A stretch of DNA of 64,000 nucleotides, from the NCBI GenBank assembly GCA_044892525.1, contig CM097888.1, positions 37,758,001 to 37,822,000 on the forward strand, read 5' to 3'. The stretch comes from Schmidtea polychroa (taxonomy: Eukaryota). The position numbers and the translations under genes were made by a program. Shown here piece by piece: positions 25,201 to 49,548 of the stretch (the stretch's first letter is position 1; every line of letters begins with the position of its first letter). Below the pieces are notes generated by a model that saw nothing but the letters and a program-made list of their open reading frames with translations, did no database searches and was not told the DNA's origin.

Positions 25201-25476
25201 CTTTATCCGTTTTGTCCCACTGGCGAGAATTATATATTATTAGGATAAAAGAAGAAGAAATTAAAGATAGAGACGAAAACAAAAGAAATATGTATTTTCA
25301 GAATTTTTTAAAAATTTAAATAAAATAAAAGCTTAAATTGACCTCTTTATTATAACAATAAAATCAGAATAATTGACAAGACATGATAAAGAAGGAGAAA
25401 GAATGTTATTTAATTAACCTAAAGAATAAGAGGTGTCTTTCGAAATTAAATTTTGAGATCCATGATCAAATGTGCC

Positions 25477-27195
25477 TCATTTACTGTTTGTATGACTTCT
25501 TTCCACATTTTGGTTCGATTTATTAAAACTTGAAGAATTTGAAATGGTTTCCCTGATACTCGAAAGTTTGCCCCTCATCAGAGAATAAACACGTGCCGTA
25601 CAAACAAAACAAAGAGTCAACAAAAAACCTTGAAGACAATTTACCATCGAACCTAAATTTATCAAAATCTTGAGTTGTGTAAATATTGAGATAATTTGCA
25701 ATACATAACCAATGCCAAATACTGCCGTAAGTCTTATACAAAGCCACAAAGTTGAATTCGAGTCTCTCGTCTTTACCATTCTGCATTCTTTAGCAGTTTT
25801 GAATAGTTGATAAAACACAAATCCACATGTGATTAAATTCCACAATAATAACAAACAAACGGGAATGAAATACCATACCAACCCTCCAACCTCACTAGTA
25901 AACCAACAATGCTGTCCTCCATACCTTGGTCTAAGCGTTGAATTAGTCTTATCAAAATATTCAGTTACTACAGAAATTCCCACAACGGAACCAGAAACAC
26001 CAAATACACATATAAAATATATGCAAAATGTCTTCCAACCTTTATTCTTGTTAATGCTTGCTGACTTTGTGCCGAAGGTTTGTAACAGATCCAAGGCGTA
26101 AACAGCCATCCAAACGAAAGTACTCAAAGCAACAAAATGATGGAATATTGCCAAATACTTACACGAGGTTGATTTGACAATTTGAGTGTTGGTTACCAAT
26201 AAACTCATGAAATTGATCAACCAAAGACAAATACTCAAACAAACGGTTAAGTAGCCTCCGAAATTCCTAAAGACCTGATGAGTTAAATATAATATAACCA
26301 AAAAGAGTAAAGATATTAATGATACACAAGTGAAAATAAATGAGATGTGGTAAATAACTGTTTCTCCCATATCTGTCTCAAAGGTAGAATTTGTGTTATT
26401 TGAAACGTTTTTTCCATGATTGAGATTTATTTCTTTAGATTTTTCATTATTATCTTGTTTCTCCCATTTGTTAAAATCTAGTAAATAGCTAAAATGGGAA
26501 TATGGATCATTCCAAAGTTTCATTCTAAGAGAACAATGTTTGTTCCAACATCTACAACAGAAGATATTTTTATATTTTTGAAACCTGTAAACATAGGTTT
26601 TCTTTTCCCCATTTTCGCATTTGTCAATAACAATTTTATTCTGTATTAATTTAGTGTTTGTACAATTTTCAATTATATCTGCTTCACAACTTCTCTGTAA
26701 AGTTCTATTAAAATATGGAAAGATCTGACAGTGCTTTGGATTGTCAATTACTGCTTCATTAGCACTGGCATAGTCATAGATTTCTCTCGGATCGCAGTTG
26801 ACTTTCACTTGCAAATACGTAAAATGAAATTCTTCATTACATTTAGCACAGAATAGATTGCCATAGATAATCTTTATATTCGAAATCACTGGGATCCAGG
26901 ATTTGAGGGGATTTTTTGGATTGAATATATTTCTTTTGCATAAATCAGAGAGAGGATGATTGGGATTATTGCATTTATTAATTATCCACATAGCTGATGG
27001 GAATAACTTGTTGAATGGTTTGCATGACAAAACATTTCTAAGTAATCCTGGCTTACCGTGATCCTGATGGTCATAACAACAATCGCCATATAGATAACAT
27101 TGAGGATCTGAATGACATATTTGATCAATTTGTGAACCAGTGTAACTTGATCTAATTGTTGAGAGAAATATTATTAATATCAATAATAAAATCAT
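25477..27195 (-). CDS. Intronless SMB-like class-B GPCR, copy 4, ~572 aa
   Basis: First in-frame ATG is 27195 (track start 27204 is TTG). Carries CHSDPQCYLYGDCC and a 7TM near-identical to copies 5 and 6. Confidence 0.92.
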   Translation of the reverse strand: MILLLILIIFLSTIRSSYTGSQIDQICHSDPQCYLYGDCCYDHQDHGKPGLLRNVLSCKPFNKLFPSAMWIINKCNNPNHPLSDLCKRNIFNPKNPLKSWIPVISNIKIIYGNLFCAKCNEEFHFTYLQVKVNCDPREIYDYASANEAVIDNPKHCQIFPYFNRTLQRSCEADIIENCTNTKLIQNKIVIDKCENGEKKTYVYRFQKYKNIFCCRCWNKHCSLRMKLWNDPYSHFSYLLDFNKWEKQDNNEKSKEINLNHGKNVSNNTNSTFETDMGETVIYHISFIFTCVSLISLLFLVILYLTHQVFRNFGGYLTVCLSICLWLINFMSLLVTNTQIVKSTSCKYLAIFHHFVALSTFVWMAVYALDLLQTFGTKSASINKNKGWKTFCIYFICVFGVSGSVVGISVVTEYFDKTNSTLRPRYGGQHCWFTSEVGGLVWYFIPVCLLLLWNLITCGFVFYQLFKTAKECRMVKTRDSNSTLWLCIRLTAVFGIGYVLQIISIFTQLKILINLGSMVNCLQGFLLTLCFVCTARVYSLMRGKLSSIRETISNSSSFNKSNQNVERSHTNSK

Positions 27196-29269
27196 AATTA
27201 TCAATTCATTTAAAATAGTGAAAATTTAAATATTTATTTGTTTAAATTGACTGATTGTATTGTGAGGAGAATTAGGATTCAATCATATTTATAACAATAA
27301 TTTTATGAAATTAATGTCGTAATGAAATTTTGTTAATGATATTTTATTATATTTATCAAATAGGACAATCAACCGTTTTATTAGGAAAATAAAACTCGAA
27401 ATTGAATTGGGCTATTTAAACTCATCTTTTACTGTTCATTGCCAAATTTAACTTGTAATCTATTTTAAAGATAAATATAATTATTTAGAATAAATAGAAA
27501 ATAATAGTATCAGTTTAGATAGAAAGAATGAAAATAATGTAGTTTGGCAGATTATAATAAAAATCCAATATATTTATTTATTTCAACATCGTGTATAAAC
27601 ATTATAGAAATCAATATTCATGATGATTCGGGTGATCAAGTAATTACCAAAAGACTCGAAAATTCGATTGCTATTATATTTTGGTAAAATGGAGTAGTAA
27701 TTATGTTGGGTTATTAATTAATTCGTTGGTGTATAACTTCATGTATGACTTCTTTATATCAAGTAAAAGCAAGCCGTATACAATAAGTGTTTTTTTCAAA
27801 TTATATTTAAAATTTGTCAATACAATAATTTATTAATTAGATTTGCACTTTTCTTTGATATATAGTATTGATGGCAGGTAACCCAAAGGGCAACCGTCTT
27901 TTTACAAACTTGACTTGACTTCGCAAAAAACTTCCACTTTAACCTTTCTAAAACTTTTCATTCCCTTTATAGATCTCTCCTTTGAGTCAATCATTTTCCC
28001 CAATAAAATTATCAATTCTCTGGAAGTAACAAAATATAAACTAAATTCAATTATTTTCTTTTATTTTGCCTGAAAATCTTGGGAATTTTTTTTATTAATT
28101 ATATTAATTAATTTATATCAATTGAGAAAATTGGTTTGTATTTTTCAATTAATTTTGTCAATAAACCTCCCTTGGTTTGTAGTTATTATATTCGTATTTG
28201 TCTCATCCTTCGCGATTCGCTCATATCTGTTTTTTAAAAATATTAATTTTTTAATATTTGTAATTTTTAATAATTTTTTGCACTCCAATTTATTTTTGAA
28301 TTTTTTTAATTTTTTATTGTTTTTTGAGCAGTTCTTTGTGCAATTTAACCTTTTTACGAAACCTCAACAATTAGGACATTATATACAGTTTTATAAAATA
28401 AAATACTTTACACAACAAAAATGTACTACCTGATGTAATTCATATTTTATCAAAGGAAATTAATAAAGTGAACAAGAACAAACAAAATATTTAATACTTA
28501 AGAGACTTGAAACAAAATTATTAATAAAATTTCTCGAGGATATGGAATTATATTTTGAAAAACAACTTGAAAATCCCGTGTAAATCAGGCTTTTAGTAAT
28601 TCGTTACCTTTCTCTCTTTTCAAATTGTATATTCACTTTATGTTTGACAGCAAATGACAAATTTCGTTTAGTTCTTCTCTTTTGACAATAACAGTAGGGA
28701 GATGTGAGCTTGCTAGTTCATAATGAGTTCTCTGTCACCCCCTCCAAAAAACTGACCTCGTCAAAATCAAAACCTTTGTTGACCACTATCCTTAAGTTTC
28801 ATGAAAACTTATCTTCAAAACCACGTAAGCCAGCTAGTTTATTATGGCCTATTTAGCCCAATCCTCAAAATATATTTCTTTGGAGCTATTTAAAATTTTT
28901 AGTTTGATAATTTACTGACTTTATTGAGATCAAAACTATTTCAAGATCAAAACTCGTTTTCGATATCATGGTTGGATCACGGTTAAATGGCGATTCTAAT
29001 ATTTTTCCTATCTATCTCAATATAAGATGATGAAGTCTGCATATTCTAAACAAAAATAATATGTATATGTATGCTGTTTTAACGGGGTCGATGTGAGAGT
29101 ATGCAAAGACGGTATCAGAGAAGACAAATTGCATTGGAAAATGAGCGATCTAGCGAATTTGAGAATGGTTTATAGTTGTGAGGCCAAAACATGAGAAGCC
29201 ATTATGAAAATTTCAAATTTTCTTTGGTTTTTTGTAATTTCATTTCAAAGCTATTTGAATACACTTCCA

Positions 29270-29620
29270 CAGATTTCGTTGTGACAAATTCAGGTGAAAG
29301 CTCTCTTTTGGTTTTCTTTTACTGTCCCAACATAGGAAAGTTTCATCTCTTTCAGTTCTTCCACTAAATCCAGGGCAGTGAACCAATTGTCTATTGTTAG
29401 GTTGCTACTAGATTCATGTAATTGTGCTATTTTTCTCTTGATTACATATGTTGGCTTATTGCTGATGTCAAAAAGTATTTCTAACAGTCAATTCGAGATT
29501 TCGATAATTTTGTGGGGCTTATAACACCTAGTAACTACTTCAACAAATTATGAAGAGCAGCGCGATTTTTCTTGTTGGGAATATATTGATAAAATTTACT
29601 GAACTTGTCTCTTCCGAAAA
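29270..29620 (-). mobile_element. piggyBac transposase relic
   Basis: Minus strand gives GR..FYQYIPNK, then NLTIDNWFTALDLVEELKEMKLSYVGTVK, then (frameshift) KRELSPEF; these are piggyBac core motifs. Confidence 0.8.
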
Positions 29621-29643
29621 AATATGAAGAGCCATCTGGGCTG

Positions 29644-29752
29644 TTTTGGATTCAATGACTTTATCAACAACGCCTCACAAATCACACGTTTCGATAATTA
29701 TTAGGAACGTGTGATTTGTGAGGCGTTGTTGTTAAAGTCATAGAATCCAAAA
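29644..29752. repeat. Long fold-back inverted repeat (47-bp arms, 15-nt spacer)
   Basis: Arms 29644-29690 and 29706-29752 differ at only 2 positions. Confidence 0.95.
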
Positions 29753-32289
29753 AATAATGTGCAGAATGCAGTGAATACTTGTATTTTAAATGTTTTTATA
29801 TAATTTCTTTTCTTGTATATTGTATGTATTGATTGTTGTGTTAAATTAAATAATTAATAAAATTTTTTAAATTATTAAATAAAATTTTTTAAATTTTTTA
29901 AAAATAATATATTAATTTAATTATAATTTTTAAAAATAATTAAATGTTTTTATTAAATAAAAAAATTTTAATTAATTAATAAATTTACTTAAAATACTTA
30001 ATTTACATAGTTATTATATCCCACTCGGTGATGACAGGAAAACTATCGAAATATATCGTGAAAAGAATGTTTGATTGGTGTTATCTTATAAATAAGATAT
30101 AATATTTTTTTGTGCTTCTCATTTTTCTAAATCTAAAATATAATCAATTTCTGCCATTTCATTAATTAATTTAATTTTTAATAAAAATATGAATAATATT
30201 AAAATTAATTTACAAAATTCAAAGTGTTCCCGGTGTTAAATAATATAGATATAATTGAAACAATACATTAAAAAGAATTGTTACATCAACAATATCATGT
30301 AGCAAATCACTATCAAAATAAATAAATTTTACAAATGTTATTTTTCCATAATTATTTTTATTGAAATCTATTATCCTAATTACAATAAAAAATATTTTAC
30401 TAATAATTTTAAGTTTAAAACTAAATATTAAAAATAAAAAACTGTGCAGAAAATGTGTTAATCACATAAATAAAAATATACTTTAATTAAGTTAATTTTA
30501 TAATACTGTAGTTTACAAACTTTTTTATACCTTCTCCCTCTTCCATTTTTCATTAAAACCTGTTGTAAAACCCTCAATTTTCGTAAATAATATAATTTCT
30601 TAAACTATTTTTATATTTTAATTTATTTAATAAACTACAAGTCAATATTAAGGTGACCAGATTTTTTAAGTCGAAAGCAATTTATAAAGTATGGAAATGT
30701 TTCGGTTATTATGCGCTTAACAAAATATTTTAAATTAAGTAAAATGTTGTTTCAATATCTTTAGTTTTTATTTGAATGAATTTTCTTTCATTTTTTTTAA
30801 ATATTCCAAAAATCATCACTTGTATACTAACTTTTAACCTTCAGAGTAATGCATATTTTCTGTATCTCGTCATTCTCATTGAAAATCCATATATTCAAAG
30901 CTATCTATCAAAATATAATTCAAGAAGTACATAACACAAGAAACGTAGTACTTAAGGAGCAATTAAAAATTGAGTACAGTCACAACGAAGTACCATACAT
31001 TCGAAATTAGCAGACCTGGTCACTTTTCAAAATACCATAATTACATAAATTTAGCATTTTAGATTTAAAAATATATATTTATTTTAGTGTAATAAAAGTC
31101 TTTAATACATTTAATAAATCATTCAAAAATCCAAAAGGTCAAATGGATGTTTAATACAAAATAATGTTTCAATACGATTGATAGGCTTGTTTTTCAACAG
31201 AAATTTTTTCAAACCGTATTTTCATTAAGAATATTTCTACTCTTCGTTTCTTTCAATCACTAGACGACATCTTTACATTGAAACAGCTAGAGCAAAGGCT
31301 CAGTTTCACATAAGTAAAATTTACAAATGGAAATAACATTTCGAAAGTGTTACTTGTTAAATTAGGAAAGTCATTCTTACCTCATATTCAAAACGTAACA
31401 ATATTATTTTCTTGTTTAAATATCTCCTTTAATGTGTTGATACAAGATAAGCCAATAATCATTACTTGCGCGGCGGTTGGAAGTCTTAAAGAATCACATT
31501 TTCAATCACAAACTGTGGTTTTTTATCTGTGAGGATATTTGTATATAATTATCAACGAGTATTAAAATTAAATTAAATTATTAAACTAAATAATAAATTA
31601 GATTAAAAGATTTTATATAAATAAATATTATAAATAGGGTGGATATTAAGTGTTAATTTGCGCTCTAATATTACATGTGCTCTTTAATAAATAAAAGTGA
31701 GCTATAATATATATTAAAAAATTAATTTAGGATTAAGATTAATAATTTTAAGATTCCGTTTAATTTATTTTTTTAATCTATTTTAGGATCTCATCTAATT
31801 AAAATTGTAGCTCAATTTAAACAACAGCTCTATTAAAATCTAATTATGTGATCTTTTAAATCCTTTTTTAGCACAACTTAAAATTTTTAGAGGACAACCT
31901 AGAACTTTTAGTTTCCAAAATAAATATATTTTAGAGCACAACTAGTATTACCCTTTATAAATAAGAAAAAAAATTAATTTAAATCTAAAATATGTTAATA
32001 TGATGATTCGACTTCTTCAGAAATTTCAGTGATTTCATTAAACATGTTTGAATTGGATAAAATATTTAATTTTTAATATTTAATATTTATAATATTTATA
32101 ATATTTATTTATAATATTTATAATATTTATGTTTTAATATTTTATTATTTTATAAATAATAATATATTTTGTATGATAATTATGATATTGTGACCAGCAC
32201 ATAGCTCTCTTTTTAGTTTTTAGTTTTTATCAATAAATGTGGATTATCTTTTGAAGAGTTTGTACGTTGTATTTCTGAGTGTAAGGTTA

Positions 32290-32450
32290 ACTTTGGATGA
32301 AAGACGTAATGAAGTTTGAAGTCTGAGTATTGGAATCCCGAGAAAAGGTAGTTGTTCTTTTGATTCATCGTTGTCTCTGGTTTTGTATCATGTTGGCTCT
32401 TTGCAAAGCCACTATCCATCAGTTTTTGTTAGTGCTAAAATCATTTATTC
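32290..32450 (-). mobile_element. Possible Penelope-like reverse transcriptase relic
   Basis: Minus strand ESKEQLPFLGIPILR resembles the PLE motif E....LPFLD..I.R; short and decayed. Confidence 0.4.
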
Positions 32451-34101
32451 ATATCATTATCCATATCATTAATTTTACATTTTACAATTTAATAAATCGC
32501 ATATTTTGTAAACATTGTGATATTTTCTCATTTGAAAATGAAAGACTCATACAAAAAAATGTATCGGTTGTTTAAACAAACTGAAAATTTAAAATTTCAG
32601 AAAAAAAATCTTTTTAAATGGATTTTTAAAATTTCCGTGAAAACAATATAATTTTGGATAACTGATACTGCAAAATTATACATCACTATGAAATTAATGG
32701 TTGCCTGAAATATTAATTATCCACAAATCAGACTAAAAATGTATAAATAAATGATGTCAGATTCAAATAAAATACATGAAAAGTTATTTTTAAAATTTTG
32801 CAATTTATACATACATTATCTTTAAAAAAAACTAAAAATAAAGACTTGAAAAATCTTTGCACTTCCTAAGAGATTGCTTCATATCTTTAAGAGAGCGTAA
32901 CCCACAAAATAAGAATCATTGTCCTAGACGAATTGTTATATTATTTACAAACAATCTTTCTTTGACTTTTTACATAAATATAAATTTTAAATATTTTATT
33001 TGTTCACTTTTGATCTATTTTCTAAAAACATTTTCAAAAAATTAATTTTTCAAAAAACTATCATAAAATGGTTAATTACCATTGAGTTTTCAGTAAAGAC
33101 TTCTTGAACTTTGTGTCAATTTCAATATTTTATTTATATTTGATTATTGTATAAATTAATTTCATAATAAAATAAAAATAAAAAAAATATGACATCATTT
33201 ACCGTTGTCCAAACATAATTATTACATGCCTAAAAATAATTTCATTTTCATTTGATATATCCACAGAAAACAAATAATAATTTTGAATCTGTAAATAATC
33301 TATCAAATAATACATTATAGTCATGTATGCATTTAACGACTCACCCTATAGATATATTAATTGCTCATACCTTCAAAGAAGGATTTGAAATAAGTCTGGA
33401 TTAACATGTTTATGGCCATGTGAGCCACAAATGATCTACACCCTTCAAATCGATTGTCTTAAACCTTTGACTTTTTATGGTTTTTGTGATTATTAGCCTT
33501 ATTAGAACCCTAAGATCTTTTAAAAATCATGCTTCAAAAAATAAATTTATTTTAAACCGTATTTTATTGAACAAAAAATATGTGACTCGTTTTTTAAAAA
33601 GTTTACAAAAGCTTTTGGCTCACTAAACAGAAACGGAAGAATTCGCATTGTCGTTAACATTTTAAGAAAATATTTATTTTCTTTGAATTTCGTTATTCAA
33701 ATATTTTTAAGACAAAGAGATTAAAGACCAAGACGAATATTTCTTATAATAAAATTGACTTTTCACGATAATTTTATATAATAAATTGCAATATACTCTT
33801 GATATTCAAAATGGAAAAAAATACAAAAAACAAATTTAAAATTGTGTTGCAATTTTTGATTATATTGAAAATGTAAAAATTTTTAAATTTTGTTAAAAAT
33901 TTTAGAAATCTTTATAAACATTTTTTTTTGAATTTTGACTTAATTTTGAGTATAAAACTTGAAAACAATTTTTATTAATTTAATTTAATCCAAATTTTAA
34001 ACCAGTGAAAAAGCAGAAAATTTATTTAAAGGGAAGATAAAAGAAATAAAAAAAGGATCCTTTCACTAATTACATACTTTGCAGCAAAGACCTGATCTTA
34101 T

Positions 34102-34408
34102 NNNNNNNNNNNNNNNNNNNNNNNNNNNNNNNNNNNNNNNNNNNNNNNNNNNNNNNNNNNNNNNNNNNNNNNNNNNNNNNNNNNNNNNNNNNNNNNNNNN
34201 NNNNNNNNNNNNNNNNNNNNNNNNNNNNNNNNNNNNNNNNNNNNNNNNNNNNNNNNNNNNNNNNNNNNNNNNNNNNNNNNNNNNNNNNNNNNNNNNNNNN
34301 NNNNNNNNNNNNNNNNNNNNNNNNNNNNNNNNNNNNNNNNNNNNNNNNNNNNNNNNNNNNNNNNNNNNNNNNNNNNNNNNNNNNNNNNNNNNNNNNNNNN
34401 NNNNNNNN
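34102..34408. other. Assembly gap (N)
   Basis: N run. Confidence 1.
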
Positions 34409-34588
34409 TAGTAAAAATAAAATATATTTAAATAAAATAAATAATTAATAAAATAAATTAACCATAATTCTGAATCCAAATAGAATTAATTTAGTAAATA
34501 TTCATTTGCATGGAACGTGAAATATTAATTGGTTATTGACTTTAAATAAATAGTAAGGGAGAGTTCTAAAAGTGCGACAGAGGTGATC

Positions 34589-34777
34589 NNNNNNNNNNNN
34601 NNNNNNNNNNNNNNNNNNNNNNNNNNNNNNNNNNNNNNNNNNNNNNNNNNNNNNNNNNNNNNNNNNNNNNNNNNNNNNNNNNNNNNNNNNNNNNNNNNNN
34701 NNNNNNNNNNNNNNNNNNNNNNNNNNNNNNNNNNNNNNNNNNNNNNNNNNNNNNNNNNNNNNNNNNNNNNNNNNNNN
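34589..34777. other. Assembly gap (N)
   Basis: N run. Confidence 1.
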
Positions 34778-35520
34778 CTAAAAAATTGTTAATTTTGAAA
34801 GCTTCTATAATTAGCTCATAAAATCCTTTTATAATAAATAATATCTTAAAATATTTATAAAATATAGTTTCCAATAACTATTTATATACGCAATTTAATA
34901 TATTTAAAAAATTTTCTATTTTGATTTTTATTCCTGATGAAATTTAAAAAGTATATTTGATCAATTTTTCTATATTATTTTAAATTTTAAATTATTATAT
35001 TTTAATTTTTATTTAATTTTTTTAAAAGCTATTCTCAAGGTCAATAATAACAAATCAAACTGATGATTTCATTGATCTTTCCTTTAGTGTTGATTGTTGG
35101 CCATCTGTTTGTGATGAGAATTGCTTCTTTATATATGACATTTTATTGGATGTTTCCATTGGCTAAGATTTCTATTGAAATATTTTTTCTTTAATTCCTT
35201 GGTTGACATTGTGCAATTATTATTTTATTTGTGTTGTTTGCCAGAACTTCTTTCAATTTCTGTTGACCTCAATTTTGTTATCATCATATTAAAAAATAAC
35301 TAATATTGAAATGGGATTTCATTAATAAATTGATTTTAATTTATTCCAAATAATGACTCAAAGGCAAAATAAAATAATAACAAAAACTATGAAATATACA
35401 TAAATATATTCTCAGCAAAATAAATGAAATACGAATAAGGCGCATAATAATACAAAATGTAAAAAGAAACAAAGTAAAGGAGTCTTCTAACAATTAAACA
35501 AAATATTGATATTAATTATT

Positions 35521-37206
35521 TCATTTTTTTAACAGAAGATCCAATACATTCTGTTTATCATTTGAATGACTTCTTTCTGATTTCTGTGTGGATCTATTCG
35601 CACTTGATGACTTGGATATACTTTCCGTAATTATTGACAGTCTGTTCCTTAATTGAGAACGAGCGCGTTTTGTACAAACAAAACAAAGAGTCAACAAAAA
35701 ACCTTGAAGACAATTTACCATCGAACCTAAATTTATCAAAATCTCAAGTTTCGTAAATATTGAGATAATTTGCAATACATAACCAATGCCAAATACTGCC
35801 GTAAGTCTTACACAAAGGCACAAAGTTGAATTGGAGTTTCTCGTCTTTATCATTCTGCATTCTTTAGCAGTTTTGAATAGTTGATAAAACACAAATCCAC
35901 ATGTGATTAAATTCCACAATAATAACAAACAAACGGGAATGAAATACCATACTAACCCTCCAACCTCACTAGTAAACCAACAATGCTGTCCTCCATACCT
36001 TGGTCTAAACGTTGAATTAGTCTTATCAAAATATTCAGTTACTACAGAAATTCCCACAACGGAACCAGAAACACAAAATACACATATAAAATATATGCAA
36101 AATGTCTTCCAACCTTTATTCTTGTTAATGCTTGCTGACTTTGTGCCGAAGGTTTGTAACAGATCCAAGGCGTAAACAGCCATCCAAACGAAAGTACTCA
36201 AAGCAACAAAATGATGGAATATTGCCAAATACTTACACGAGGTTGATTTGACAATTTGAGTGTTGGTTACCAATAAACTCATGAAATTGATCAACCAAAG
36301 ACAAATACTCAAACAAACGGTTAAGTAGCCTCCGAAATTCCTAAACACTCGATTAGTTAAATATAATATAACCAAAAAGAGTAAAGATATTAATGATACA
36401 CAAGTGAAAATAAATGAGATGTGGTAAATAACTGTTTCTCCCATATCTTTCTCAAAGGTAGAATTTGATGTGTAATTATTGTAATTTAGGACAGAGAGTT
36501 CCTCTTCATTCTCTCCATCTTCATCCCACTTATCGTAATTGAATAAGTAACTAAATCCTAATGAGCCCCCTGAATAAAACCTTTTATTTGTCAAGGTAGC
36601 ATTTCTTTCAATGTTAGAACAATTTTTAATATCACAATTATCCAGAACTCTTCTATGATTTTTAAGATTATTTTCATTTGTTCTAATCATACAATTCCTT
36701 TGTAACCCTTTTTCAAAATATGGTAAAACTTTGCACAATTTTGAGATTTGTTTCATCACAGTTTTATTCTCAATTTTATCTTTATCAAACGGAAGAATTA
36801 AACCGCATGCAATTTTCACTTGCAAATACGTAAAATGAATTTCTTCATTACATTTAGCACAGAATAGATTGCCATAGATAATCTTTATATTCGAAATCAC
36901 TGGGATCCAGGATTTGAGATGATTTTTGGGATTAAATATATTTCTTTTGCATAAATCAGAGAGAGGATGATTGGGATTATTGCACTTATTAATTATCCAC
37001 ATAGCTGATGGGAATAACTTGTTGAATGGTTTGCATGACAAAACCTTTCTAAGTAATCCCGGCTTACCGTGATCCGGATGGCCATAACAACAATCGCCAT
37101 ATAGAGAACATTGAGGATCTGAATGACATATTTGATCAATTTGTGAACCAGAGTAACTTGATTTCATTGATGAAAATAAAATTATCCATATTGATAAAGT
37201 ATTCAT
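35521..37206 (-). CDS. Intronless SMB-like class-B GPCR, copy 5, 561 aa
   Basis: ATG start, signal peptide, CHSDPQCSLYGDCC and 7TM; lacks the second YxNxxCCxC module. Confidence 0.92.
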   Translation of the reverse strand: MNTLSIWIILFSSMKSSYSGSQIDQICHSDPQCSLYGDCCYGHPDHGKPGLLRKVLSCKPFNKLFPSAMWIINKCNNPNHPLSDLCKRNIFNPKNHLKSWIPVISNIKIIYGNLFCAKCNEEIHFTYLQVKIACGLILPFDKDKIENKTVMKQISKLCKVLPYFEKGLQRNCMIRTNENNLKNHRRVLDNCDIKNCSNIERNATLTNKRFYSGGSLGFSYLFNYDKWDEDGENEEELSVLNYNNYTSNSTFEKDMGETVIYHISFIFTCVSLISLLFLVILYLTNRVFRNFGGYLTVCLSICLWLINFMSLLVTNTQIVKSTSCKYLAIFHHFVALSTFVWMAVYALDLLQTFGTKSASINKNKGWKTFCIYFICVFCVSGSVVGISVVTEYFDKTNSTFRPRYGGQHCWFTSEVGGLVWYFIPVCLLLLWNLITCGFVFYQLFKTAKECRMIKTRNSNSTLCLCVRLTAVFGIGYVLQIISIFTKLEILINLGSMVNCLQGFLLTLCFVCTKRARSQLRNRLSIITESISKSSSANRSTQKSERSHSNDKQNVLDLLLKK

Positions 37207-37538
37207 TGATCGATTGTGAATTATTTGTGATCTGGGTTCAATTTATTTGTTTAAATTAGCAAGTTGTGTAATGAATTATTTGATAGGCTGATAAAGTTGT
37301 CACAGGATTTGTCTGTTACAGAAAATAGAAATTAAATATGATTTATAGAAATTTATTATGCAAACAGAATGAGATGTGGAACATTAATTAATCTTACTGA
37401 TATCGAAGAATAATAATCTGCGCCGAATTAATTTGATATCCGTTGCGTTTATCTTGAATTTAATTATTCCCTGTTCTCTCATATTACAAATATATTTAAA
37501 CAAAATAACAAAGTTTTGTACAATTACAGTGTATTTCT
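37207..37538. repeat. 5' flank of GPCR copy 5, near-identical to 49549-49880 (5' flank of copy 6)
   Basis: 332-bp colinear match with only a few substitutions. A second, more diverged block matches about 37560-37740 vs 50260-50435. Confidence 0.95.
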
Positions 37539-38399
37539 CTAAATATTATTTCTAAAAAATTTATTCTTTGGTTTTCTCAGATTCTTAGATTCTTATTCAT
37601 ATTTAAATTAGACTACGAAAAGACTTCGCATTGGAAGATCATTGGTCCTATTTGGACATTCACATTTTCAACAATATCAAATCTAAATTCATTGACTGCC
37701 TCGGTGCAGTGATTATTTAAATTGTTTATTAATTTGTATAATGACAACTTATAATGACAATCGGGTGTGCAAATAATGCAAAATTAGAAAATAAATATTA
37801 TTTAATAAGTGTTACATATGGTGGGTTACAGGTAATCCACATCTTACCCTTTCTTAGCCAATCCTGAGTTGCTTAAAAAGAAAATTTGAGTTTATTTTTG
37901 GTTATGACGAGACATTTTTAGATTTCCGTTTGAACTCTAACAGCAAACCTTTGTGTGTTCTTTTTGCTTATGTAAATTCAATGGTAGTTATTAGCTTGTC
38001 AACTATTAATGTTACTTGCATGGGTCAATTTTAATGATAATTCTATGAAATGTTTAGTGCTTATCCTGCTAAATCGAAATCAAGTTTAAATATGGACCAA
38101 TGTGTGAATTCTTGAAGCATTAGAATGTTGAAAATATGCACATGAAATTAATTAAGTTCATAACTATCTTTAAAAAGAACCCCCAATTATTGGACAGATG
38201 AAATATATTTCAAGATCATTTCAAGACAATTTTGCTATAACTAAATGAACTGTCGCCTCTTTCAAACTAAACGGATCGTTTGATAAAGATAACCATCATA
38301 ACTATGAAAGATGACTTTAATTATCATTTGTAAATATTTTGAATTATCAATTGTGACAATTACAATAAACCACACGAACTATGGTTAATCTCGTTTACC

Positions 38400-39370: not shown

Positions 39371-40266
39371 TTTTGTTTTGTATAATTCTGTTATGTATTT
39401 ATGTTGTATTTGAGTTTGCTTCGTGTATTACTTCTTGCTTTTGTTTGATTTTTCTTTAAATTTGGGGTTATTACTTTGGTATTATGTGGATTCAATTAAT
39501 TATGTTTATTTGGTGTTTTAACGTGTTTCTAATTTAGTTGGACTTACTACTATGTTTGCGTGTTATGTTACTACGCATTTCGTCACGTTACTTATGCATG
39601 GGACTAGAGTAAGTTTTTGCCCAATACATATCATTTTGTAGAAGTTTAATAATATAAAATATCAAAATACCATGTTGTTGGACACACATTTACAAGTGAA
39701 AAAAATTATATATGGTTAAAATCTGTCAAGCAGATCATTTGAAAATTATTAAAAATTGAAGGCAATAGATAAAAGTTTTTAGTTCTATCAGTAGTAAAAA
39801 TAAAGAAATTGAAAAAAATATAAATTTTGCAATATTATATAAAGTGCAAGTTGACATTAATAAATTGGAGTGCGAAAGATTTCCTTTTAAACGAGTTTTA
39901 GATCGGTTGAATTTAAAGAAAAATCTCCCTTGTTCAATTAATATAATTGAATCACAAATGTAATAGTTGCTATAATATTAGTAATATTTCATCATGAAAC
40001 TGAGTAATGTAATTTAGTTATAAGATATTTTTAAAAAAAATTATGTATGACCTTAACTTGTTTAACTCAAGTAATTAAGTATATTAAAAATGCTACACAT
40101 TTCATTCGGAAATAATATCATTGTCACTTTAGCATTGGTTAAGAAGTAATCAATTTATTTTATCTGACTATTTTATTCTTGAAATATTTTGAATTTACTA
40201 ATGAAAATCTGTTAAATAATTAATAAATATTATAAATTGAAGTATTAAATCGCAGTTCTTATAATT

Positions 40267-43200
40267 ATGGTAAATTTATTGGATGAATCTCCTATAAATC
40301 AAGCAATTGATGCCGTTGTTAAACTTGCTAAAAATATTATAAATGATGAGAACTCCGAATCAAAAAGAAAAGTTGAAAGAGATTTTAAATCTTGGGAATC
40401 ATCAGATTCAAAAGAAAATGACTTGTTTAATGATAAAATATTCCGGTAAATTTATTTCATTTATTTTCAAAAGTACTTATAATTTTGACGGGTGAATAGT
40501 TCAAAATCTTTATCAAAAATTCTATTATTGGCATCTAATATAAATCACTGTATATTACTTGTGTCATTATTAATCAGTCATATAAAGCGGTAAATATTTT
40601 ATTATCTAAATATGATTGGATGTTATTGGAAGCGTGCATCTGTATTTAACGGTTTGCAAAATTTAACATTCACATAAAATTTTCGTCAAAACTGAAGTAT
40701 ATCCTGCAACCTATTTAAAATTAAATTAATCACCTTTAAAAATCGTATTTACATATTATACAAAATGCTTCACAATTAGAGCTGTGATTATTTAAATTAA
40801 ATTATATTCGGTTCGAAATCTAGAATATAAAATTCTAACTCATTAAAATTTATGATTTATATATTATAAAATATTAATGATAGAAAGTAAAATCGGTCAT
40901 TTTGACTGGTCTGGTAGTTCTAGTATTAAAAGACATTTTTAAAATGGTTTCTAAAATGAAAAATGTCAATATATATTGACTCACGCAAATGGTTTACACC
41001 AGAAACCACTCAGATACGTTTCCAATAATATAAGAAAAAAATTAATAATCTTACATCATAGAAACATACATACTTACTTTCACTCTAATATTCTCATTGA
41101 TAGTGCAATAAGATACGCCTTACACTATCGAAATCTAAAATGTTGTAGAAAAATAAATACTGCACACAACCACAACACATTCTACAAAACACATGCAAAC
41201 TCTATATATAGAAATGCGCCGCTGAGATACGTTTATAATAACTTTATTTTAGACAATTTTGAAAATATAAAAGATTGTTGAAAATGTTTTTAAATGTATT
41301 TTTAAAGAAACTACGTTAAATTATCATGAGAATGACGAAATATCATTGTAAGAATTATTTGAGTTAAAATTAAGTTAAATATTCATTAGAATTTCTGATT
41401 TGTTTTAGAAATGTTTTAGAAAAATACATCGTTGTTGATTGAACTATCAATTGATTTAATTATTTAATTATTATTAAAAATATATCTGACTTACATTATA
41501 TCAAAATAATTATAAAATAATTATAAAATAAATTTCATAAAATTCCTAAAAAACTTGAAAATTAATTAAAACTAATTTATAATACAAATGTTGACTAAAA
41601 GTAATATTTAAGAACTTGAATAATGATCTCATATATGGATCAAAATTCAAACCTTAAAATTAAACATCTGATATGAAAGCTATTTCTAATGACAAATGAA
41701 ATTCATTAAATTGGTGAGTCACCCATTGTAGACCAATTGGTTTACGCACCAACCACCACTATAGAAAATGTTATTATTATTTTATATTATAGAGTATTTT
41801 TTATCAAATGCAACACGATGTACTAAAAAATACATGTAAACTTTCCATAAGTAGAAATAGTTCACGGCAAAAAAACTTTTCAAAAATTGTATTATTTAGG
41901 AAAATGACAGATTAAAATTAAGAATTCATAGACACTGCTGAACTCAATTTAAAAAATATGAGTTGTTGGAAAATTAAAGAAAAAACAGTAAATTATGGAG
42001 CAAAATTTCATTTTAAATGGTTATTGTAATGTATTGTATTATTTTATTTGTCGGTTGTTTTTGTTATATGTAAATTACAATCTCGCACGTCGATATCGTT
42101 AATGAAACAGTTTACGTATGAATTGTGTATTCTCGATCAAACTTTCAATTAATCCTTATCAAATAACCGGAACATTCGATCAAACTTTCACTTAATCCTT
42201 TCAGAATAACTTTCAGAAAAAAAAGAAAATAATAAAATAATATAGTATAACGAACCAATTAATTATTACAACTTTTATTAAATATAAAATTAACTAATTA
42301 AACAACCTGGTTATTATTTCTTTTTCATGGTTTCGAAAGTTCGAAACTCAAATAAATTTCACGGCACACCATTGTGCCGCGGCACACAGTTTGGACAACA
42401 CTGCACTAATGTCTAATTAAAATTAAATATTTCTCAAAACAAATTATATATTTTTTAATGTAATGAATACTATTTAAAATTCTATTTTTTTTCTTACTGA
42501 AAATATCGCAACGATATAATTAACATGAATGGAAAATGGAACAGAATGGAAAAAATTTATTTTTTTTTCAAAAAAAATGTGTTTTGAAAATTAGATTTTA
42601 AAAAATAAATTTACAAAAACAAACTAAGTGGAAAATCACTTTTCGATTTTAGGACCCATTTAGAGTGGCGCCCCTATGCCGAATTTTGTGCTTCAAAATA
42701 TTTGTTTAATATCCCTTTAAATTCTAGCAATTTTTATCAAATTATAGTCTAAACAATAGTTACAAGCAAATTCGATGTATTTAAATTTTGTATTTAACCT
42801 TAATCTTAATATTTTTTTTATTTTTTAGTGCTTGTTACATTGTTCACCTCTACAGCAGAAGAATCGGTTGCTTTTATAATTTATTGAATTCTTTTAAATT
42901 AAATGGAAATATTAATAATTATATTCGAACAGTAAATTATTAAAAATTTTTGAATTTAAATTCTTATTTATTAATTTTGCTAGTGCGAAAAAGTGACCAG
43001 TATTGGTTGCGGTGCAGCTCCAGAAATTTTGTCCTATTTACATTACGTTCGTTTTAAATTGAAATGTAATACTTTGAACTTGAAATTTATTGGGTACGAT
43101 TCAATCATAAATTGGGATACCTACATTGATGTAATGAAACAAAATCTTGACAAACGAACTACTTTCGAATTCAAAGTTTGTTTCTATATTTTAATTTTCA

Positions 43201-45395
43201 TGTAGATGTATGATGCAATTGCAATGGGAAATTAAATTACTTGACCTATATTCTATAATAAATAGTTAAAGAGTAAATTATTAAAAATTTTTGAATTTAA
43301 ATTCTTTTTTTAATTATAAGTAAACGGCAATCGTTCTTTTCACGCTATATTTCGACAGTTTTCCTGTTATCATCAGGTAGGATATAATAACTATTTAAAT
43401 TAAGGATATTAAACAAATTTATTAATTTTATTAATTATATAAAAATTTTTTTTTATTTAATAAAAACATTTCATTCTTTTTAAAATTTATAATTAAAATA
43501 ATATATTATTTTTAAAATTTTAGCATTTATAATTTAATTTAATAACTTAAAATTTGTTTAATTAATTATTTAATTTGACAAACACCAATCAATACGTACA
43601 ATATTCAAAAAAATATTTAAAAACATTTAAAACACAGGTATTCACTGCATTATGTACATTAATTTTCGGATTCAATGACTTTATCAACAACGCCTCACAA
43701 ATTACACGTTCCCAATAATTATCGAAATTTTAAAATCAGACATACCTATTTTACTCTTACAGCACTTATTGTGCTCACTAATATTGGTCAAAATCTTCGG
43801 TCTTTAATGCTCTCAGGCTCGAACACAGAGATGACGGGAAGTAACTCCAAATTACACCCATTATATGTAAACTGATAGACGAGATCGGAACATAATTCGA
43901 TCGGAGTTTTAGACTTATTAATGAACATATTGCGTACTTTCCATGAAGTTGACACTATCCCATAGTTGAAATTTCCTAACTACTTTCTTATCTTATTATC
44001 TTATTCTTATTTTATATGCCTAGAGATTGATCATTAATAAATATTCATAGCCAGTGTTCTTATAAAACAAAGTCTCTTATTCATTCACATATTGTGTAAT
44101 ACAGGTCAATGTAGGAAAATTAATTATTACTAATAGATAAATGCTCAATTTCAGGATTCTGTATTCGATAAGTTCGAAGATGAGAATAAAGGAAGTGACT
44201 ACAAAAATTAGTAATTTTTTAGTCAAAATATTTTAAATTTTGATGGAAATGTAGCAATTTTTATAATAACTATTGAATAAAACCTAAGAAAATATAAAAT
44301 TTTATTTCAACCAAATGTTTGCATTTTCAGTCAAATAAAATGAATAAATTTAATTCACTTTTCACAAATTCTAAATAAATAACAAATTTCTGAAAATCTG
44401 ATTTTCAAATTCACACGGTCTTTTGAGCTCTTTAGTTCGTTAGTTATCTTAGGGAATTTTCTCTTTTATTCGGGTTTTTATTTTCACTACGTAAACTACA
44501 TTGTCCAATAAATTTGTACTTTTAATTCAACAATTTTGAAAAAATGACTTTCATTTTTCTATCTAATGATGATTAAATGGATTTATAAAATTTTAATTAA
44601 ATTATGTTTTTAAATCTGCACCTTCTAAGAATCCCTTTTCAATTTGAAAATATTTTTATACATTTATTTTTTTGTTTCCAATTTATTCCAGTTTATACTA
44701 TAAAATATGGTTAAAATTCAGTCTGTAATCCAATTAATTACTTTTTGATTAATATAAAGTGATGATTTCTTGGTAACAGCATTAATTAAATTTTAAACAA
44801 TTAAATGATAATTTTCGGCTATACGATATGAAATTGACAAGGATTATATATTATTTGCATCAAAAGGTTTAAATTATCATTTAATTGTTTATTACTTTTT
44901 GATTAATTCGATTAAATCTTTTGATTAAACTGAAAAACATTTGAAAAAAGCATTGCCAAAAATTTGTTACAAAGGGAAAATAAGTTTATAGTAATGAAAA
45001 TAAATTTATAAATTAAATGAATTTCTTTATGATTTTATGTATTTAATAACAAATTTTATTATGTAATAATGACAGAAATTCAAATTTAATAGCATTCTTA
45101 AATTTTATTAATCATTTAATTACAAAAATATTTTCATTTTCATTTGTAGAATGAAACTGTTAATATCACTACTCTTCGGAATATGAGAAAAGGAGGGGTT
45201 TGTTTAATGTCATTCTTTCACTTCAAAGATTTTCCTAACATTTGGAAACTTTTGAAAAGTCATTTTGAATTGGTTATAGTTCTTGATGTCAAAAGTGCAA
45301 ACTTTCGGTCCGTAATGCGGGGACGCGGTTATTCAATTATTAATTTTAAAGATGGGATTCAAGAGAAATATTTCTATTATTTCTATCGGTTTTAG
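40267..45395 (+). CDS. Predicted multi-exon class-I SAM-dependent methyltransferase-like gene (copy A; one junction unresolved, possibly a pseudogene)
   Basis: GT-AG, phase-compatible exons 40267-40445, 42829-42931 and 42984-43175, then probably about 43206-43264, 43321-43376 and 45150-45395. Motifs VTSIGCGAAPE (motif I), FIGYD...W (II) and MRKGGVCLM (VI-like). Confidence 0.65.
40997..41772 (-). mobile_element. Second, inverted copy of the TA-flanked TIR element at 14542-17350 (no Tigger; one end lost)
   Basis: Starts TA|CACCAGAAACCACTCAGATACG. Its reverse complement aligns to 14560-14903 joined to 16814-17350. Confidence 0.75.
42355..42403 (-). mobile_element. Solo terminus of a Buster/Charlie-type hAT element
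   Basis: Reverse complement CAGTGTTGTCCAAACTGTGTGCCGCGGCACAATGGTGTGCCG is a typical Buster end; no partner end was found. Confidence 0.5.
43435..43726 (-). repeat. Dispersed repeat, inverted homolog of about 29690-29975
   Basis: Shares GGATTCAATGACTTTATCAACAACGCCTCACAAAT, the spacer and the adjoining AT-rich tract. Confidence 0.85.
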
Positions 45396-45991
45396 TTAAT
45401 ATCTTTTATATAACTTATTCTTTTTAACATTCAAATTGAACTTCTCTACATTCAAATGAATAATAAACTGTAATGTGACTTTATATTGCAATTTGGATTT
45501 TAGTAGAATTTTTATTATAAATATAAAATTCAATTTTTTTAGAGAGCGTAATAAATCATTAAATTTAACATATTTCACTCTACATAGTGCCAGTGACTAC
45601 CCTGGAAATAAATAAACCTTAGTTTCACGTACCCCATCTGAAATTGTATTTAATTTTAAAATATAAAAATTTCCACATTTGCAAATAATAGTTTAGATCA
45701 ATGGTCTTCAAAAGTTCGGGTTTGCAATAACTGGTTTGACGGTAGTGTGTAATTACTAGGTAGAATTAATAAAAAAAATTGTTATATGTTTATCATGGTA
45801 GTGTAGATTTGGTGGCCACTTGCATCCCATATTTTGCCTTAATAGTTTTTACTTTTAAAGCCACCACTCACTGGCTTATCCTTCTGGTTTGGAAACCATA
45901 ATTATTAATTTTCCCTCTATTTTGTAATAAATTCATAATTGTGTCGAGAACATTTTTGTACCGGTAAACCAGATTTTGATTAATTTTTAAT

Positions 45992-47100
45992 TTATACTGG
46001 CACGTTGACGTCAGTCCCTAGAGGGTCTGGATTGATAATAATAATGGATACAATTTTACCTTAACGATCATTGACTTGTATACAAAATATGCATCGGTAA
46101 TACGGCTGTAATTATTAGAAATGATTTTGAAGACTTGTTTGAGAATTCATTGAATTTTCATTCTCCACCAAAAAAGCGTTATACTGATAATGTCTAAGAA
46201 TTTTATAACAAAATATTCAAAGAGTTTTTTGATAATAATGAAATTGAAATTTACTCAACCTGATGAATGAAGTCAAGGTCCTTGACATATTCCTTTTATA
46301 GAGCGATTTAATAGAACATTGAAAAGATGATGTATAAAACATAAAATGAAATCGAGCGAAGGCAAGGCCCTATTGTTAAGTCGATTGAAAGAGCTAATAA
46401 AACTCAATGTCAGCGGAAAATTGCCTGATAACTCAATACCAATATTATTAACCCTACACTGCACAAATTTTTATTTTTAGTTATCAATTATGTAAGTATA
46501 TGTAAATTTATGCAAGGAATACGGGAAAAGGAATTTTAAAAATCCAATTTAGCTTTGGGGCACGGCTTCCTCTGATGAAAAAACGACTTATTTTTGATTT
46601 TGAATGTAATACGTATTTAACAATGTGTAAATTTGAAGTTATAACAAGAAAAAAATATATGCGTCACTGTTTAGTATAGGGTTATAGACTGATTTTATAA
46701 AAATTTATAATATAACCTTATAGATAACAAAAGATGATGAAGGTAATTGTACTTAAGCAATATATTACCTGCTAAAGATTATAGTGTTAAAACATATGAA
46801 CTTACTTCGGGTTTAAAGTTAAAATAGAAGGTAAAGGAGATACAATTTCAGGTGCAGATATTAAAAAAATATTTGGAAATAGCCAAAGCTAGCACTGTGA
46901 AGTATATACGAGAGTTAAAAGTAATTCATGTTGCTCCAGCTGTGAAAGAAGTAAATCAAAGACAAGGTCTTAGTGAGTTAGACGAAAAGACAACGCGTGG
47001 ATTATGAAACATCACGCACTTTTTACCTGATAATCCAATTGAACTTTTTATTGAATTGTTGAAGCTGCTAAGGGCATCGAACAATTTGAATGGGGAATTT
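45992..47100 (+). mobile_element. Polinton/Maverick-type retroviral-like integrase relic
   Basis: WHVD, NNGYNFTLTIIDLYTKYA, PKKRYTD..EFYNKIFKEFF..NEIEIYST and IERFNRTLK in order (45992-46330). LPDNPIEL at about 47023 resembles a Polinton ORF C-terminal motif (weaker). Confidence 0.7.
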
Positions 47101-47844
47101 TATTAAATAGCACTCTTCATTAAGTTGATATTTTTATTACATGGTTTATTGTATCTTTTTATCTAATGTATTTCTTGGATATAATAATAAACTTAAAAAA
47201 TTAAATAACAAAATATTAAATAATAATATTAAAAATATTGGTTTAAATAAAAATAATAAAAAAACAAAATAAATAAAATTAATAATCAAAGAATTTACTA
47301 AAAAAATATTAAATATTAAAATTATTAATAAACTTAATTAAATATAAATAAATCTTAAAAATTTCGACAAACTTTTATAAAAACAAAATGAACTTTAAAC
47401 TTTCGTTAATTACATATTAAACAAAATATTTTTAAATGCGCGCAAAAACCAATACACATTTGAAAAATTTTTTTTTTGAATAACATGGATTAAAAAAACC
47501 CAAAAAGTACTCATTTAAACCTTTCAAATTCCTACTAAAATGAACCTACAAATACACTTTACATATGATTCAATGTTGCTGTAGAATAAATCAAGTATAT
47601 GGGCACCAAATAATATTGGATTTTTTCATTTTGATATGATAATTATTTAATACAATTTTTAAAATAGAATGTTACAGTTTGAAAAATTTATTTTAATTTA
47701 CTCAAAATAATGACTTAAAACAAAATAATTATAAAAGTAATGAAATATAAATATAATATTCTCACCAAAATGAAAAATACGAATGATAACGCATAATAAT
47801 AATTCAAAGGTCAATAAGAAATAAAGTAAATGTTTCTTTTAAAA

Positions 47845-49548
47845 TTATATTATTTCATTTTTTAACAGAAGATCCAATACATTCTGTTTATCATTTGGAT
47901 GGGTCTTCTCTGACTTCTGGGTGGGTCTATTCGCACTTGATGACTTGGATATACTTTCCGTAATTATTGACAGTCTGTTCCTTAATTGAGAACGAGCGCG
48001 TTTTGTACAAACAAAACAAAGAGTCAATAAAAATCCTTGAAGACAATTTAACATCGAACCTAAATTTATCAAAATCTTGAGTTGTGTAAATATTGAGATA
48101 ATTTGCAATACATAACCAATGCCAAATACTGCCGTAAGTCTTACACAAAGGCACAAAGTTGAATTCGAGTTTCTCGTCTTCACCATTCTGCATTCTTTGG
48201 CAGTTTTGAATAGTTGATAAAACACAAATCCACATGTGATTAAATTCCACAATAATAACAAACAAACGGGAATGAAATACCATACCAACCCTCCAACCTC
48301 ACTAGTAAACCAACAATGCTGTCCTCCATACCTTGGTCTAAGCGATGAATTAGTTTTATCAAAATATTCAGTTACTACAGAAATTCCCACAACGGAACCA
48401 GAAACACCAAATACACATATAAAATATATGCAAAATGTCTTCCAACCTTTATTCTTGTTAATGCTTGCTGACTTTGTGCCGAAGGTTTGTAACAGATCCA
48501 AGGCGTAAACAGCCATCCAAACGAAAGTACTCAGAGCAACAAAATGATGGAATATTGCCAAATACTTACACGAGGTTGATTTGACAATTTGAGTGTTGGT
48601 TACCAATAAACTCATGAAATTGATCAACCAAAGACAAATACTCAAACAAACGGTTAAGTAGCCTCCGAAATTCCTAAAGACCTGATGAGTTAAATATAAT
48701 ATAACCAAAAAGAGTAAAGATATTAATGATACACAAGTGAAAATAAATGAGATGTGGTATGTTATCGTTCCTGCCATATCTGTCTCAAAGGTAGAATTTG
48801 ATGTGTAATTATTGTAATTTAGGACAGAGGATTCCTCTTCATTCTCTCCATCTTCTTCCCACTCCTTATAATTTAGTAAGTAGCCAAATTCATTAAAGCT
48901 AAATGGAATTTTTATCACAGGTAAGGATGCATTTCTTTCAATATCAGAACAATTTTTAATATCACAATTATAAATATCTTGAGGATGATCGTCATTTGGG
49001 GAGGAGATGTTTGAAAAATCATTTGTTCTAATCATACAATTCCTTTGTAACCCTTTTTCAAAATATGGTAAAACTTTATACAATTTTGAGATTTGTTTCA
49101 TCACAGTTTTATTCTCAATTTTATCTTTATCAAACGGAAGAATTAAATCTTCAATTTTCACTTGCAAATACGTAAAATGAATTTCTTCATTACATTTAGC
49201 ACAGAATAGATTCCCATAGATAATCTTTATATTCGAAATCACTGGGATCCAGGATTTGAGATGATTTTTGGGATTGAATATATTTCTTTTGCATAAATCA
49301 GAGAGAGGATGATTGGGATTATTGCATTTATTAATTATCCACATAGCTGATGGGAATAACTTGTTGAATGGTTTGCATGACAAAACATTTCTAAGTAATC
49401 CCGGCTTACCGTGATCCGGATGGCCATAACAACAATCGCCATATAGAGAACATTGAGGATCTGAATGACATATTTGATCAATTTGTAAACCAGAGTAACT
49501 TGATTTCATTGATGAAAATAAAATTATCCATATTGATAAAGTATTCAT
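47845..49548 (-). CDS. Intronless SMB-like class-B GPCR, copy 6, 567 aa
   Basis: ATG start, signal peptide and 7TM; closest to copy 5. Confidence 0.92.
   Translation of the reverse strand: MNTLSIWIILFSSMKSSYSGLQIDQICHSDPQCSLYGDCCYGHPDHGKPGLLRNVLSCKPFNKLFPSAMWIINKCNNPNHPLSDLCKRNIFNPKNHLKSWIPVISNIKIIYGNLFCAKCNEEIHFTYLQVKIEDLILPFDKDKIENKTVMKQISKLYKVLPYFEKGLQRNCMIRTNDFSNISSPNDDHPQDIYNCDIKNCSDIERNASLPVIKIPFSFNEFGYLLNYKEWEEDGENEEESSVLNYNNYTSNSTFETDMAGTITYHISFIFTCVSLISLLFLVILYLTHQVFRNFGGYLTVCLSICLWLINFMSLLVTNTQIVKSTSCKYLAIFHHFVALSTFVWMAVYALDLLQTFGTKSASINKNKGWKTFCIYFICVFGVSGSVVGISVVTEYFDKTNSSLRPRYGGQHCWFTSEVGGLVWYFIPVCLLLLWNLITCGFVFYQLFKTAKECRMVKTRNSNSTLCLCVRLTAVFGIGYVLQIISIFTQLKILINLGSMLNCLQGFLLTLCFVCTKRARSQLRNRLSIITESISKSSSANRPTQKSEKTHPNDKQNVLDLLLKNEII

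Follow-up and report, generated by a model that had tools for sequence, protein, structure and literature searches.

Regional gene conversion has been described for TLR1 and TLR6 in mammals, where the paralogs are closer than the orthologs in one region and the reverse holds in the ligand-binding part (Kruithof et al. 2007, PMC2077338). According to PMC10055975, where it cites Kwakkenbos et al. 2006, EMR2 (ADGRE2) is a chimera formed from CD97 and EMR3 by conversion. Receptors with a Somatomedin B (SMB) domain include planarian PARF1 and Nematostella NvX, in the passages of PMC3261222 drawn on here, and the SMB-bearing members of the Methuselah and Methuselah-like (Mth/Mthl) family, in those of PMC4768249; keyword matches in these parts of the two papers gave no conversion mosaic for the SMB-bearing families. 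Here we describe an interlocus conversion mosaic in a tandem array of six intronless open reading frames (ORFs), each of 561–595 amino acids (aa), in a 64-kb stretch of Schmidtea polychroa DNA (assembly GCA_044892525.1, contig CM097888.1, positions 37,758,001–37,822,000), which is called the window throughout. All six are class B (secretin/adhesion, 7tm_2) G-protein-coupled receptor (GPCR) genes, since 6/6 ORFs match Pfam 7tm_2 at 39–55 bits against a gathering cut-off of 20.6. The mosaic concerns copies 4, 5 and 6 of the array (c4, c5 and c6; copies 1–3 are c1–c3), in which two nearly identical blocks surround a diverged segment of the ectodomain, the cassette.

Two homogenised tracts around a diverged cassette

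The mosaic was measured by DNA alignment of c4, c5 and c6 in 30-nucleotide (nt) bins. The three genes are 95–100% identical in two blocks, the N-terminal Cys-rich module (N block) and the seven-transmembrane (7TM) region, separated by a cassette of 116–137 codons in which c4 is 25–29% identical to c5/c6. By bin, the DNA identity of c4 with c5/c6 is 86–100% in alignment columns 61–402 and 816–1613 and 27–73% in columns 403–815, and the edges are sharp. The longest identical run between c4 and c5 extends over 270 nt, whereas no run exceeded 60 nt in 5000 permutations (P ≤ 2e-4). Uniform divergence along the coding sequence (CDS) is thereby rejected. The near-identical flanks around a barely alignable cassette, which the original prediction had claimed for these three copies from the letters of the window, are real, and its cassette coordinates agree with those derived here (Table 1) within 2 nt. 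That prediction also placed the divergence in the cassette, which is correct as far as it goes, but the signal peptide of c4 (47% aa identity) and its C-terminal tail (46–54%) have diverged from those of c5/c6 as well. No homology of c4 with c5/c6 was found outside the CDS, and the upstream region of c4 is unrelated.

Silent sites follow the same division. Nonsynonymous and synonymous divergence (dN and dS) were estimated pairwise by the Nei-Gojobori method for each block. Between c4 and c5, dS is low in the N block (0.097) and the 7TM (0.043) but reaches about 2.2 in the cassette and 1.3 in the tail; between c4 and c1–c3 it is saturated in all blocks. Since selection acting only on amino acids can neither homogenise nor saturate silent sites in one block and not in another, the blocks of c4, c5 and c6 have different histories.

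Comparison with another species leads to the same conclusion. A protein of another species, P0001, shares 79% identity with c4; it was taken as the likely c4 ortholog on similarity alone and compared as protein sequence only. In the N block c4 is 95% identical to its paralog c5 and 81% to P0001, and in the 7TM the values are 96% and 87%. The cassette shows the reverse, with 72% identity between c4 and P0001 and 29% between c4 and c5. In the tail, c5 and P0001 are 79% identical, c4 and P0001 43%, and c4 and c5 54%. An approximately unbiased (AU) test disfavours a clade of c4 and P0001 for the 7TM (p=0.022); for the N block the test points in the same direction but is not significant (p=0.21). 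The silent sites, the ortholog/paralog reversal and the identical runs within unrelated flanks all mark c4, c5 and c6 as an interlocus gene-conversion mosaic. The homogenisation of the flanks by conversion that had been proposed is thus supported by dS of 0.04–0.10 in the blocks against a saturated cassette and tail, by unrelated flanking DNA, and by paralogs closer to each other than c4 is to P0001.

We consider it probable that the locus reflects regional concerted evolution around a segment that one sub-lineage remodelled while constraint on it was relaxed. Recurrent ectopic (interlocus) conversion would have homogenised two tracts, one of about 340 nt with the N-terminal Cys-rich module and one of about 800 nt with the juxtamembrane segment and the 7TM. 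Conversion would have spared the signal peptide, the cassette as the membrane-proximal half of the ectodomain, the C-terminal tail and the flanking DNA, all of which would therefore display a much older underlying divergence. Conversion tracts may stop at the cassette edges because cassette divergence and indels block heteroduplex formation. On this proposal c4 would keep the ancestral disulfide-rich cassette under ordinary purifying selection, and the cassette of c5/c6 would have become shorter and lost as many Cys as make up two to three disulfides, with constraint on it relaxed but not gone.

Alternatively, the assembly itself could have made the mosaic and the c5–c6 patches described below, through collapsed or misjoined paralogs or polishing errors. 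Near-identical repeats are prone to mis-assembly, and five runs of N occur in the 64 kb, two of them between c4 and c5, at 744–1419 nt past the c5 stop (35521) and about 6.9 kb from the c4 start. Nevertheless, no N run crosses any CDS or cassette; c5 and c6 lie on one ungapped stretch (34778–50935) and c4 on another (22249–34101). Because gaps separate these stretches, the order and spacing of c4 relative to c5/c6 rest on scaffolding and are not certain, but each gene is continuous. The same derived cassette occurs at two separate loci with intact frames, the patches are stop-free with the frame kept, and P0001 independently possesses, in the other species, the c4-type architecture and the c5/c6-type tail. 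An artefact is on these grounds highly improbable. The possibility that c5 and c6 are haplotype duplicates was considered separately and rejected, as their homology is confined to about 2.2–2.7 kb around the genes.

The derived cassette of c5 and c6

The cassette of c4 is not hypervariable, because it is conserved with P0001 to a degree resembling that of the pairs c2–P0002 (76%) and c1–P0004 (74%). Two cassette types exist among the three genes, and only c5 and c6 have the derived form, with a 16-residue deletion relative to c4. The ectodomain has 20 Cys in c2 and c3 and in the relatives of these two, 18 in c4 and P0001, 14 in c5 and 12 in c6. All of these counts are even, as would fit if disulfides were lost whole. 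The c4 cassette does keep the ancestral Cys pattern of copies 1–3, as had been stated earlier. Within the SMB-like module, the group of c4, c5, c6 and P0001 has jointly lost two Cys (alignment columns 61 and 70) relative to c1–c3, an earlier step in the same disulfide-losing trend.

The c5/c6 cassette is still coding and its frame is clearly maintained. It is stop-free over 116–119 codons, as was none of 20000 shuffles (0/20000), the other frames are full of stops, and every cassette indel is in frame. A family motif of the FSYLLNF..W type survives in both c5 and c6. We rejected the idea that a compensated frameshift gave rise to the c5/c6 cassette or to the patches: the DNA itself differs, the stops in the other frames speak against it, and the cassettes of c4 and c5 are homologous in frame 1 only (E=3e-8). 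AlphaFold models the c4 cassette with a predicted local distance difference test (pLDDT) score of 56–80 up to about residue 230, and c5 residues 175–254 with 23–49. In c5/c6 the cassette probably forms a glycosylated stalk that is for the most part without structure. Neither a search of 5.8 billion proteins nor a metagenome scan with c5 found a relative of the c5-type cassette.

These features are open to a second reading, in which c5 and c6 are degenerating duplicates heading to pseudogenes and conversion from a functional c4 repairs all but the cassette. The loss of 4–6 ectodomain Cys and 16 residues would agree with it, as would the low confidence with which the c5 cassette is modelled. The 7TM can be read similarly. 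With P0001 and the other paralogs as the reference for polarising replacements, c4 has 0 unambiguous derived residues, c5 and c6 have 5 and 6 private ones, respectively, and c5 and c6 share 2. One of the shared changes replaces Trp with Cys at the start of TM6 (STLCLC versus STLWLC), where Trp is present in all nine other sequences compared; the replacement may alter receptor function. However, the ORFs of c5 and c6 are intact, like that of c4, and a neutral AT-rich segment of 116–119 codons would gain stops. The three length differences between c5 and c6 (patches A, B and C) are all multiples of 3, the family motif is kept in both, about 310 nt upstream are conserved between the two, and the 7TM dN/dS is 0.26–0.50, not 1. 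Decay towards pseudogenes is thus an unlikely account of the pair.

The 7TM of c4 differs from those of c5 and c6 at 19 and 20 DNA positions, while c5 and c6 differ from each other at 29. From these differences and the derived-residue counts, c4 is most likely the conserved master copy and c5/c6 behave as faster-evolving derivatives, with conversion probably directed from c4. Relaxed constraint on c5/c6 would, under regional concerted evolution, be the cause of the cassette remodelling.

The patches between c5 and c6 and the case for a recognition segment

The copies c5 and c6 are 96–100% identical from 310 nt upstream to codon 179 (−310 to +536), beyond which patches begin. Their 3' flanks are 64–86% identical and cannot be aligned beyond about 2.7 kb. 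The two sharp patches with preserved frame that had been noted between these copies were recovered at the DNA level as patches B and C. In patches B and C together, dS between c5 and c6 is about 3 and dN 0.64, against 0.074 and 0.033 in the rest of the cassette. Since the silent sites of the patches are saturated too, the patches are islands of old or foreign sequence in recently homogenised DNA and not replacement hotspots. The D-x-C motif of c1–c4 is kept in patch B of c5 and lost from that of c6, which is C-rich. Such islands may have been missed by a more recent conversion between c5 and c6, or may be short imports from an unseen donor. A small inversion or a local template for the patches was excluded, as neither strand of the window matched them over more than 15 nt. 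A tblastn search of the window for silent donor cassettes or gene fragments returned nothing below E=0.09 outside the six genes, and a search beside the cassette for recombination signals or repeats gave only 12–18 nt repeats and one imperfect 28-nt pair, judged to be at chance level for AT-rich DNA.

The original prediction regarded the cassette as a diversified recognition segment, as in immune or allorecognition receptors. In that case a specificity-determining segment under diversifying selection would have been kept or made different while conversion maintained the scaffold. Several of the findings are what such a system would produce: the mosaic is real and has sharp edges, the cassette frame is kept through saturating divergence with in-frame indels only, the even Cys count is a hint that selection still favours a protein able to fold, the longest branch of the cassette tree (2.9 substitutions per site) is that of c5/c6, and the patches and small clusters of change look like short imported tracts. 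Nevertheless, the cassette dN/dS is 0.31–0.52 for c4 versus c5/c6 and 0.48 for c5 versus c6, which counts against diversifying selection, if only by a weak pairwise test, and in the patches dN remains well below the saturated dS. There are just two cassette types, of which that of c4 is conserved with P0001; the 64 kb contain no donor fragments, and the protein search revealed no further cassette of the c5 type. The derived cassette has lost Cys and residues, and is modelled at pLDDT 23–49. Patches B and C fall in a poorly modelled stretch of c5 with pLDDT 23–44 and not on a confidently folded surface. The recognition reading is not borne out by these results, and we hold it to be quite unlikely. 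Still less probable is that patches B and C and the 7TM clusters are templated imports from unseen family members elsewhere in the genome, with mini-conversion diversifying the membrane-proximal ectodomain and c4 resetting the scaffold; if true, an animal receptor of the chemosensory or recognition type would have a system of patchwork diversification.

Regional concerted evolution with relaxed constraint has points against it as well. In the cassette tree c5/c6 group as the sister of c4 (support 81/83) and not outside c4 and P0001, an alternative that is not rejected (p=0.13), and block-wise trees do not date the split of the c5/c6 cassette relative to that of the species. If the sister topology is true, the cassette evolved extremely fast after the species split, and conversion with old divergence explains less. 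The patches of c5 and c6 are 57–58% alike where they can be aligned, which is below the adjoining 3' flank and unlike the prediction for a simple unconverted remnant. Patchiness is not confined to the ectodomain, since the 7TM of c5 and c6 also has short clusters of 4–7 changes in 9–14 nt, for which the window contains no donor. The low pLDDT of the c5 cassette is a weak sign of disorder, because its AlphaFold alignment has very little depth. Likewise, saturated dS makes the cassette dN/dS unreliable, and pairwise averages are a weak test.

Receptor family and genomic setting

The proteins are predicted to combine an SMB-like, Cys-rich ectodomain with a 7tm_2 core, resembling Methuselah-like and adhesion receptors. 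A Somatomedin_B match at the N terminus is weak in 6/6 ORFs (14–20 bits, below the cut-off of 23.1), and the relative P0009 clears that cut-off with 27 bits. No GPS or GAIN family matches any of the six proteins at E≤0.1, so that they do not classify as canonical adhesion GPCRs. Methuselah_N (PF06652) is likewise without a match at E≤0.1 in the six; the Mth/Mthl family admits ectodomain-negative members, according to a passage of PMC4768249, and the missing domain would thus be compatible with the wider family. Among solved structures, the 7TM of c4 is nearest to CD97, ADGRE1 and ADGRL3, and the fold also matches CRF1R. Its best fold matches in Swiss-Prot are Mthl3, Mth2 and Mth, with ADGRE and ADGRL scoring nearly equal. 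Fold searches of the ectodomain against PDB and Swiss-Prot gave 7TM matches only. The nearest ESM Atlas clusters, mostly arthropod or cnidarian, have an SMB + DUF8401 + 7tm_2 architecture, and DUF8401 (PF28443) is carried by 92–94% of their members; P0001 has a precomputed match to the same family. Those relatives that bear names are from arthropods.

About 40 residues before TM1 lies the motif F-S-Y-L-L-N-F-x-x-W (c4 aa 236–247, FSYLLDFNKW), which is nearly invariant family-wide and retained by c5 and c6. In spacing and hydrophobic pattern the motif bears a loose resemblance to the tethered-agonist strand of adhesion GPCRs, despite the lack of a detectable GPS or GAIN, and may be followed as a lead.

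Table 1. Positions of the features of c4, c5 and c6 and of assembly gaps, numbered from the first nucleotide of the window
Feature	Position	Strand	Description
c4 CDS	25477..27195	(-)	from ATG; conserved, most likely parent-like copy with ancestral cassette; 7tm_2 E=1.6e-14
c5 CDS	35521..37206	(-)	561 aa; derived cassette
c6 CDS	47845..49548	(-)	567 aa; derived cassette minus two further Cys
Homogenised tract 1, c4	26803..27144	(-)	SMB-like N-terminal Cys-rich module; dS 0.08-0.10; c5 36814-37155, c6 49156-49497
Homogenised tract 2, c4	25598..26395	(-)	juxtamembrane segment and 7TM; dS 0.04-0.06; c5 35672-36469, c6 48005-48802
c4 cassette	26392..26802	(-)	137 codons, 9 Cys; ancestral type; 72% identical to P0001
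c5 cassette	36466..36813	(-)	116 codons, 5 Cys; derived type
c6 cassette	48799..49155	(-)	119 codons, 3 Cys; derived type
c4 C-terminal tail	25477..25597	(-)	diverged from c5 35521-35671 and c6 47845-48004; P0001 tail is of c5/c6 type
Patch B, c5	36641..36673	(-)	33 nt; c6 48971-49018, 48 nt; the two unalignable
Patch C, c5	36523..36598	(-)	76 nt; c6 48856-48928, 73 nt
c5 upstream region	37207..37547	(-)	96-100% identical to c6 49549-49889 over about 310 nt, then decaying
N runs	19775-19924, 21920-22248, 34102-34408, 34589-34777, 50936-51106		assembly gaps; five in 64 kb
Two assembly gaps	34102..34777		34102-34408 and 34589-34777; intergenic, downstream of c5

In 2-kb bins, the window has the composition of AT-rich animal DNA (GC 19–43%, mostly 22–30%). 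The likely start of c4 is the ATG at 27195, the TTG at 27204 being only a start chosen by the ORF tool. The same tool began c1 at a TTG (10732–10776), for which the likely eukaryotic start is the ATG at codon 16; the first-ATG starts of c1 and c4 align with the starts of the other copies.

Transposase sequences and repeats also occur in the window. The 3' parts of a pogo/Tigger-like transposase element at 15945–16824 and 60049–60929 are 98.5% identical over 881 nt, and with a full ORF at 15202–16680 the element looks like a recently active transposon in and beside the array. A hAT-like transposase has an intact ORF of 760 aa (2102–4384), and its 2-kb bin reaches 43% GC against 19–35% in all other bins of the window. 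The intergenic spacers of the array have dispersed repeat fragments in common, which are probably transposon remnants: 29689–30095 and 43310–43727 (inverted, 82%), 17025–17352 and 40995–41313 (79%), and 14748–14903 and 41507–41661 (84%).

Comparison with known systems

The array resembles immune and allorecognition receptors in its clustered genes, whose products combine a scaffold that is conserved and an extracellular segment that diverges. It differs from them in that there is no excess of replacements, no large set of variants and no donor cassette in the window, and in that the divergent part has lost its disulfide framework.

By domain content, the closest relatives are PARF1, NvX and the SMB-bearing Mth/Mthl members, as characterised in the passages cited at the outset, along with the SMB + DUF8401 + 7tm_2 architecture of Pfam 38.1. 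The features in common are one Somatomedin-B-like module at the N terminus, an ectodomain rich in Cys, and a 7tm_2 core with Mth/Mthl and ADGRE/ADGRL as its closest matches. These SMB-type adhesion-like and Methuselah-like families, in the parts of those sources drawn on here, also expand in particular lineages. Unlike them, the SMB match of the array genes stays below the Pfam cut-off, and the genes have no Methuselah_N domain.

By mode of evolution, EMR2 and TLR1/TLR6 are the nearest parallels. Like the array genes, EMR2, as summarised in PMC10055975, belongs to class-B/adhesion-type paralogs in which duplication and conversion have given the ectodomain and the 7TM different nearest relatives; by the same summary it has EGF repeats and GAIN/GPS, whereas the array genes show no GPS match and are intronless. 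TLR1 and TLR6 are tandem receptor paralogs with the same ortholog/paralog reversal as c4, c5 and P0001. They belong to another protein family, and only one tract is converted in them, whereas here two tracts flank an unconverted segment. The unconverted segment of c5/c6, moreover, looks remodelled or relaxed, not like a conserved alternative binding site.

The three receptors had been put forward as the best candidate in the window for an undescribed system. Our study indicates instead no new kind of biology but a clear case of regional concerted evolution in a widespread and uncharacterised family of animal receptors that joins an SMB-like ectodomain to a 7tm_2 core. Within the ectodomain, the membrane-proximal half would be the part able to change, while the SMB-like module and the 7TM are held constant, and c4, as the conserved copy, is the one to choose for functional work. 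The logic is that documented for TLR1/TLR6 and for EMR2/CD97, of which c4, c5 and c6 provide a new example.

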